Shown: piece after piece, positions 36,157 through 37,155 of the stretch
How positions within the stretch are numbered: position 1 is the first letter of the stretch
Layout of the letters: every line of letters starts with the position of its first letter
Assembly (NCBI RefSeq): GCF_046119375.1
Contig: NW_027367499.1
Coordinates: forward strand, 1-57,584
Reading direction: 5' to 3'
Origin: Phyllobates terribilis
Taxonomy: Eukaryota
Length of the DNA: 57,584 nucleotides
Program-made: the position numbers and the translations under genes
Notes under the pieces: model-generated
Databases searched by the model: none
The model's input: only the letters and a program-made list of their open reading frames with translations
Told to the model about the DNA's origin: nothing

Positions 36157-36559
36157 CAATTTAATATTAAGCCCATGTAACGATAAGTCGTTGTTGTTTT
36201 GATTTGAACATTGTATTTGTTGCACTTTTTCCTCATTGAATGAAGCCCATGTACACTGGATCCAGCTAAATGAAGCCCATTTACATATAACAAAGCCTGG
36301 TTTCCAATATCTTCCATTGGATTCCAAATTTGAAAATCACCCACACTGATGTGACATTGCACTACGGTTCCCATCATGCTTTTCAGCATGGGACCCGGGC
36401 ATATGTACCCTCGAATCTAGAGAAATAATGGAGATAGTGGGTGTGAGCTGTAATCTAGATGGAAGCCATTGAAGCGGCCTAAGTCTTCTATAAATTCCGC
36501 CCCCAGGCAAGATAAAATCTCAGTCTAAGACAACACTCTCCTTTGCATTCTACATAGTG

Positions 36560-37155
36560 ATGAATTTTGATAGGGTTACTATCAGGTACCGTGATGGTAC
36601 GATTTACTACCGTTACTTCTCCTTCGACAACAATCTTAACAACGTGCGTCGAATACCAACATCGTCGACGACAACCATAGCGGAGGCAGTCTTCGGTGTT
36701 CCGCAGACGGAGGTAAACCTTGATTCTGTGTTTAATATGTTGCATCTTCATGACCTGCTTTGGTAACATACGTGTTTGCATCCCAGGAACAAATAGCCTT
36801 GTATGATTTCACTCATCATCATGATGATGCCTTGCTTGCCTCCATCCTGTCCTTCATTCGTACGAATCCTGGGTGCACAGAGCTGGACTGGGACTTTATT
36901 TCTGGAAAGTACAACGAGGCAACTGGGGAGGGTGAAACGCCAGGAGTGCTAAGGGTGAGGTTTGACATGCTGAAGAGTATGTACGCTGAGTGGACCAGGT
37001 TCATAAGGGCTTATCCCGAAAGCCCCGATACTCCCATTGACAACGAATGGTGGACAACAAGTTGCCCCCCCGAGAATGAGAAATTCAGGGACCGTCCACT
37101 GCATCCCTCCACGGTTGAGTTCCTTGCTCGCATCCCTGAGAACTTCGGTGGATGA
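36560..37155 (+). CDS. Two-exon 173-aa protein with Myb/SANT-like (Myb_DNA-bind_3/LIMYB-type) domain resemblance; exons 36560-36712, 36787-37155
   Basis: TATA ctataaat at 36488; 74-bp GT-AG phase-0 intron; open frame. The sequence DDALLASIL...DWDFISGKYNEATGE..TPGVLRVRFDMLKSMYAEW...IDNEWW...EKFRDRPL follows the Myb/SANT-like pattern by eye only. Confidence 0.7.

Follow-up and report, generated by a model that had tools for sequence, protein, structure and literature searches.

Mutator-like elements (MULEs) acquire or invent accessory genes on which their mobility or their escape from silencing depends, examples being MURB of maize MuDR and VANC of the Arabidopsis VANDAL elements, and plant mobile domain (PMD) proteins have by now been connected with antagonism of Polycomb silencing. 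In chromatin regulators, SANT domains are small, three-helix and Myb-like; they have an acidic surface and bind proteins or histone tails, not DNA. The accessory proteins of MULEs are reported to be very diverse and lineage-specific, and MURA binds MURB (PMC12973397). Here we analyze a two-exon unit, referred to below as the spacer open reading frame (ORF), which is flanked by the transposase gene and the PMD gene of a plant Mutator-like transposon in a 57,584-nucleotide stretch of DNA (the window; positions 1 to 57,584 of contig NW_027367499.1, RefSeq assembly GCF_046119375.1, Phyllobates terribilis). We favor, with somewhat less than even confidence, the reading that it is a lineage-specific accessory gene of a PMD-type MULE, whose product would be a small acidic helical protein acting through protein contacts.

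The unit and its candidate signals, as read from the sequence, are as follows.

36165–36285, plus strand: three direct copies of a 17-mer, AATGAAGCCCATKTACA-like, 275–395 bp 5′ of the ATG
36489–36495, plus strand: TATAAAT box, 65–71 bp 5′ of the ATG
36560–36712, plus strand: exon 1, 153 nt, 51 codons from the ATG, 3′ edge GAG/GTAAAC (the slash marks the exon border)
36713–36786, plus strand: predicted intron, 74 bp, GT..AG, phase 0
36787–37155, plus strand: exon 2, 366 nt or 122 codons (36787–37152), then the stop codon (37153–37155)
37415–37420, plus strand: AATAAA, candidate poly(A) signal, 260 bp 3′ of the stop

With the start codon at 36560 (+), the predicted splice joins 51 and 122 codons in phase 0 into a frame of 173 codons. 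An earlier note on this DNA had proposed that two ORFs are joined in just this way across a 74-bp phase-0 intron into a 173-aa protein, with a TATA box about 70 bp upstream; on direct reading its coordinates and arithmetic are correct, and the box is in place. The predicted intron is T-rich (29/74 T, GC 39%), has the 3′ edge CATCCCAG/GA and contains an in-frame TAA (36764–36766). Because the first in-frame ATG of exon 2 does not come before residue 61, an upstream exon is needed for eukaryotic translation; the stretch from the TATA box to 36560 is free of ATGs. TATAAAT itself occurs 11 times on the plus strand of the window. Two of the upstream 17-mers are exact copies and one is 76% identical, and none occurs elsewhere in the element; they are possible upstream elements of the spacer ORF. 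Exon 1 encodes a basic protein (pI 8.2) that looks strand-rich and has no family match in Pfam; the same note had remarked that the first 51 residues resemble nothing recognized.

The spacer ORF is probably real, or recently real, coding sequence rather than a chance frame. Codon usage was scored with a model trained on 12 Pfam-supported ORFs of the window, with the element's genes scored leave-one-out, and was compared with a null set of 231 stop-free stretches of at least 50 codons outside annotated areas (mean −0.038, standard deviation 0.10). With stop codons excluded from the score, exon 1 reached a log-odds of 0.135 and exon 2 of 0.105 bits per codon, ranking in the top 5.6% and 8.2% of the null, respectively; the element's own genes lie mostly at 0.087–0.172 bits per codon, and the PMD C-terminal piece at −0.004. 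Both exons scored positive in their own frame and negative in the five other frames, and the predicted intron was negative. GC content at third codon positions (GC3), for which base counts were pooled over both exons, was 0.57 against a null mean of 0.40 (top 5.6%), compared with 0.53–0.62 in the MULE and PMD genes and 0.46–0.48 in the host genes of the window. Total GC is 0.47–0.51 in the exons, 0.39 in the predicted intron and 0.36–0.41 in the flanks, and drops from 0.55 to 0.33 directly after the stop of the spacer ORF. The ESM Atlas recognition value of exon 2 was 2888, where at least 2300 is reached by 91% of known proteins and 9% of shuffled ones. It is the combination of composition, codon and Atlas results, none decisive singly, that makes coding sequence likelier than chance.

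The main rival is a fortuitous or decaying frame in the transposon spacer, with no functional product and with the GT..AG borders and TATA box present by coincidence. By our own estimate, a window of equal size and composition should contain two to three stop-free runs of at least 131 codons, and nine unannotated runs of at least 120 codons are observed. The element may moreover be old, because its ends are only roughly like terminal inverted repeats (TIRs; ~31347–31380 and 41636–41669) and no matching target-site duplication (TSD) was found at them. The lack of relatives and of a family or fold match, described below, also fits a dead frame. Such a frame sits poorly, however, with two adjacent frames that both fall in the top 5–8% for codon usage, with a GC3 of 0.57 amid flanks of 0.36–0.41 GC, with GC steps that coincide with the proposed exon borders, and with an Atlas value within the range of real proteins. 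On balance we regard it as rather unlikely.

Sequence searches were done exon by exon. With exon 2, a word-index protein search gave no candidates, and phmmer against 1.84 billion representatives gave nothing genuine: its three matches (an RTX-like 1609-aa protein, a 5× repeat protein and a 6× repeat protein) were rejected because internal repeats of unrelated proteins inflate the scores. Only chance matches appeared with phmmer against the PDB at E ≤ 10, and neither a metagenome scan with exon 2 nor scans of viral contigs gave a match. A metagenome scan with the transposase alignment yielded 80 loci, all distant (22–43% identity, mostly 23–30%), and comparison of both exons and the spacer with these loci by tblastn, phmmer --max and blastn gave no match; the tBLASTn search for homologues suggested in the earlier note came back empty for both exons in these 80 loci. 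Three ENA contigs of 5–8 kb encode relatives of the neighboring transposase ORF at about 81% identity.

The C-terminal part of the protein may have a Myb/SANT-like fold, a possibility to which we give a little less than an even chance. Pfam reported no family at E ≤ 10 for exon 2, for the 131-aa ORF or for four sub-pieces; since HMMER filters discard most matches above about 0.1, any family similarity is weaker than ~0.1. Exon 2 did not match the profiles of Myb_DNA-bind_3 (PF12776), Myb_DNA-bind_4 (PF13837) or MADF (PF10545). Its family-bearing neighbors in the ESM Atlas come nearly all from Myb_DNA-bind_3, Myb_DNA-bind_4 or MADF clusters, plus DUF6818, with scores of 0.82–0.86 and 129–150 shared features, which the Atlas itself rates as a lead only. 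Single-sequence AlphaFold2 prediction of whole exon 2 was unusable (pLDDT 54), and Foldseek found no match to this model. When residues 1–82 were modeled (pLDDT 67), helices were predicted at 14–26, 35–41 and 52–75, an order and length that would suit a trihelix or Myb-like domain; Foldseek and wider PDB-based searches found no significant fold match for this model. The aromatics F8, W35 and Y66/W69 of exon 2 would fall at about one per predicted helix region. The Myb/SANT-like domain announced in the earlier note was therefore not confirmed, as Pfam at E ≤ 10, phmmer and the Foldseek check it had called for, run on both exon 2 models, all came back without a genuine match.

Exon 2 is acidic (pI 4.68, with 21 D+E against 11 K+R; pI 4.66 for the 82-aa core), and so lacks the basic DNA-contacting surface of a Myb domain. 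Acidity as a rule marks the SANT domains that bind proteins and not the Myb domains that bind DNA, and the composition of exon 2 is compatible with the former and not with a typical Myb DNA binder. That exon 2 is a DNA-binding protein of the Harbinger type is far less probable than that it has the fold. The corresponding alternative, that of the earlier note, holds that the product of the spacer ORF truly is a DNA-binding Myb/SANT-like protein, of the PIF/Harbinger ORF1 or LIMYB type, captured by the Mutator element and kept as an accessory factor. The Atlas neighborhood, the three predicted helices and the spacing of the aromatics all speak for it, as do the phased CGTGACG arrays of the element (see below), which call for some sequence-specific binder. 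We nevertheless judge it quite improbable.

Capture itself was also sought in the surrounding DNA. No Harbinger TIR pair or 3-bp TSD brackets the spacer ORF, and the inverted pairs in 35900–37800 are 10–17 nt long, at chance level only; a nested Harbinger insertion was rejected on these grounds. No Harbinger transposase (DDE_Tnp_4) was present among the scanned window ORFs of at least 110 aa. Neither phmmer against the 1.84 billion representatives nor the word search detected homology to Harbinger ORF1 or host LIMYB-type proteins, and the protein collections searched held no parent gene for the spacer ORF. With neither Harbinger TIRs and TSD nor a parent gene in the databases, the proposal of the earlier note that the unit is cargo captured from a Harbinger element or a host gene is unsupported, while the signs of a separate insertion that would have spoken against its joint reading of the locus were looked for and not found. 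Its interpretation is in this way partly upheld: the gene model stands, and neither the Myb/SANT identity nor the Harbinger capture was confirmed. Judged from its sequence context, the spacer ORF looks like an addition to its own element lineage. The relatives are distant (about 25% identity) and so do not date its origin. Instead of being a recent capture, it may have originated or diverged within the element.

Capture of another kind would make the spacer ORF a transduplicated host gene fragment in the style of Pack-MULEs, with its coding look a relic and without a function for the element. Capture of host gene fragments is common among MULEs (for example PMC8903248), and the spacer ORF is an extra in its own lineage, preceded by repeats that differ from those of the transposase and PMD genes. 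Yet the plant proteomes of the 1.84-billion-protein library yielded no parent, the unit is complete rather than a fragment (start codon, intron, stop and TATA box), and in GC3 it agrees with the genes of the element and not with the host genes of the window. We consider this origin highly improbable.

The favored reading, an accessory gene, requires a place inside the element and apart from the transposase gene, and such is the place of the spacer ORF, which is bounded by the stops of the transposase gene (36057) and the PMD gene (37712) and sits within the TIR-like ends and the CGTGACG arrays. Its two neighbors are the following.

33180–36057, plus strand: MULE transposase (PF10551, E 6e-15) with an OTU-like C-terminal domain (DGNCGYR ... 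HWVSV)
37712–39078, minus strand: PMD gene (PF10536, E 5e-32 and 4e-9)

The OTU-like domain is of the cysteine-protease type, and the PMD gene is convergent with both the transposase gene and the spacer ORF. The last 36 residues of the transposase are kept up to its stop (36055–36057) in about 30 related loci. Because the tail is conserved to its own stop, the spacer ORF is a separate unit, and the idea that it is a 3′ exon of the transposase was rejected. Within the transposase gene, the ORF at 34708–36057 probably runs on through a short intron that separates the OTU His motif (HWVSV) from the conserved tail; a relative with 81% identity (P0004) has the ORF break at 34708 as well, which points to conserved introns and away from decay. 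A 219-codon Gly/Glu/Ala-rich frame (39469–40128, minus strand; 0.154 bits per codon, a coding-like value) precedes the PMD domain on its own strand; it has no Pfam match and probably represents the N-terminal exon of that gene. The AT-rich stretch that separates the 3′ ends of the spacer ORF and the PMD gene carries two tandem copies of a 59-nt unit (37440–37557), 76% identical.

The arrangement of the two neighbors recurs elsewhere. In 22 plant-derived metagenome loci, a transposase-OTU gene is followed downstream by a PMD match on the opposite strand (for example L035:10001-13255, L006:1225-4828 and L025:5774-9018, from the series L004–L070), and 9/10 downstream opposite-strand ORFs were PMD in Pfam. 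Its presence across loci marks this as an old, conserved two-gene architecture. The distance from OTU to the PMD C-terminal part could be measured in the 15 loci where the PMD C-terminal exon matched; it is 750–1140 bp in 14 of them and 437 bp in the other, and about 1900 bp here. Stop-to-stop spacers in relatives measure 392–513 bp (five loci), 929 bp (one) and 1529 bp (one), and 1654 bp here. The spacers of these distant relatives contain no counterpart of the spacer ORF or comparable frame. In one sub-family of relatives, the spacer carries a repeated 68-codon frame that lacks an initiating ATG and seems to be of low complexity, so that it is probably non-coding.

Fourteen copies of the heptamer CGTGACG/CGTCACG are present in the window, where chance would give 1.27, and all of them lie in three arrays (31438–31568, 32119–32197 and 41476–41626) with a start-to-start spacing of mostly 24 bp. 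Two arrays adjoin the TIR-like ends, and one is directly 5′ of the putative transposase promoter. The pattern resembles a phased docking platform for a binder that the element itself encodes. Inward of the array on both sides of the element stands a AAAAGCCAGAA motif (~32210–32225, plus strand, and ~41445–41460, minus strand; the right-end version is TATAAAAGCCAGAAT), and these motifs face the transposase gene and the PMD gene. The arrays precede the transposase and PMD genes; no array lies near the spacer ORF, which has its own 17-mer repeats instead. The layout suggests a common promoter design for the transposase and PMD genes that is not that of the spacer ORF. We also entertained a bolder idea, that the unit founds a new family of small acidic SANT-like adaptors specific to PMD-carrying Mutator elements, bridging the transposase-OTU and PMD proteins or tuning their loading on the 24-bp-phased CGTGACG arrays at the ends and promoters of the element. 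If true, the adaptor would be the third component of a self-recognition or anti-silencing module, but we hold this to be a long shot.

Outside the element, the window consists of ordinary DNA of a flowering plant. Host and repeat content lies at 5389–9613, 16426–18672, 25348–26139, 46378–46881 and 53664–54392, and comprises ABC transporter pieces, an NPH3/BTB gene, a Copia reverse-transcriptase piece, a Copia gag piece and a CACTA (tnp2) transposase piece. The best database fragments for the NPH3/BTB ORF are 78% identical and its best named match, from Papaver nudicaule, is 74% identical, in a comparison from which a length filter excluded full-length proteins.

Returning to the accessory gene that we favor, the proposed mechanism would run as follows. 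A unit with its own TATA box and two exons over a 74-bp intron, placed in the convergent transposase-OTU/PMD spacer, would encode an element-specific accessory protein, whose C-terminal part would form a small acidic helical domain, possibly SANT- or Myb-like in shape. Because it is acidic, this protein would be likelier to act through contacts with the transposase or the PMD protein than through sequence-specific DNA binding, and would in this resemble MURB with MURA in maize MuDR. Several observations weigh against this proposal. Every composition statistic taken singly is just a 5–8% tail, and the structural model, built from one sequence, is of middling confidence and lacks a significant fold match. 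No second copy of the spacer ORF exists in the window, and no homologue was found in any protein or contig collection searched. A protein resembling it is also absent from the collection that holds the 81%-identical transposase relatives, a weak hint that the spacer ORF may be absent or broken in them.

Compared with described systems, the spacer ORF shares with MURB of maize MuDR and VANB/VANC of Arabidopsis VANDAL the character of a small, extra, lineage-restricted gene beside the transposase in a Mutator-like element, and like them it has no relatives outside its family. Unlike them, it shows no detectable similarity to any protein in the library search and is known here from sequence alone. 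In contrast to MuDR, the position of mudrB, convergent with the transposase, is held here by the PMD gene, which makes the spacer ORF a third unit. It is about as large as PIF/Harbinger ORF1 proteins (Myb_DNA-bind_3/4, MADF), its predicted core likewise has three helices, with roughly one aromatic in each helix region, and its language-model neighbors come from the Myb_DNA-bind_3/4 and MADF families; it differs from them in failing the Pfam models, in having no significant structural match, in being acidic rather than basic, and in residing in a Mutator element without Harbinger ends or transposase. The pI of 4.7 of exon 2 would fit the SANT domains of chromatin regulators, a likeness that is analogy only, since exon 2 has no sequence or fold match to them. 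As a third gene of a transposase-OTU/PMD element, and an orphan, it would be a further accessory invention and a possible partner of both proteins; at present it is a flagged candidate, a single-copy gene model without relatives, not a discovery. On the reading that we favor, the spacer ORF would belong with the orphan accessory ORFs of MULEs, a kind already known.
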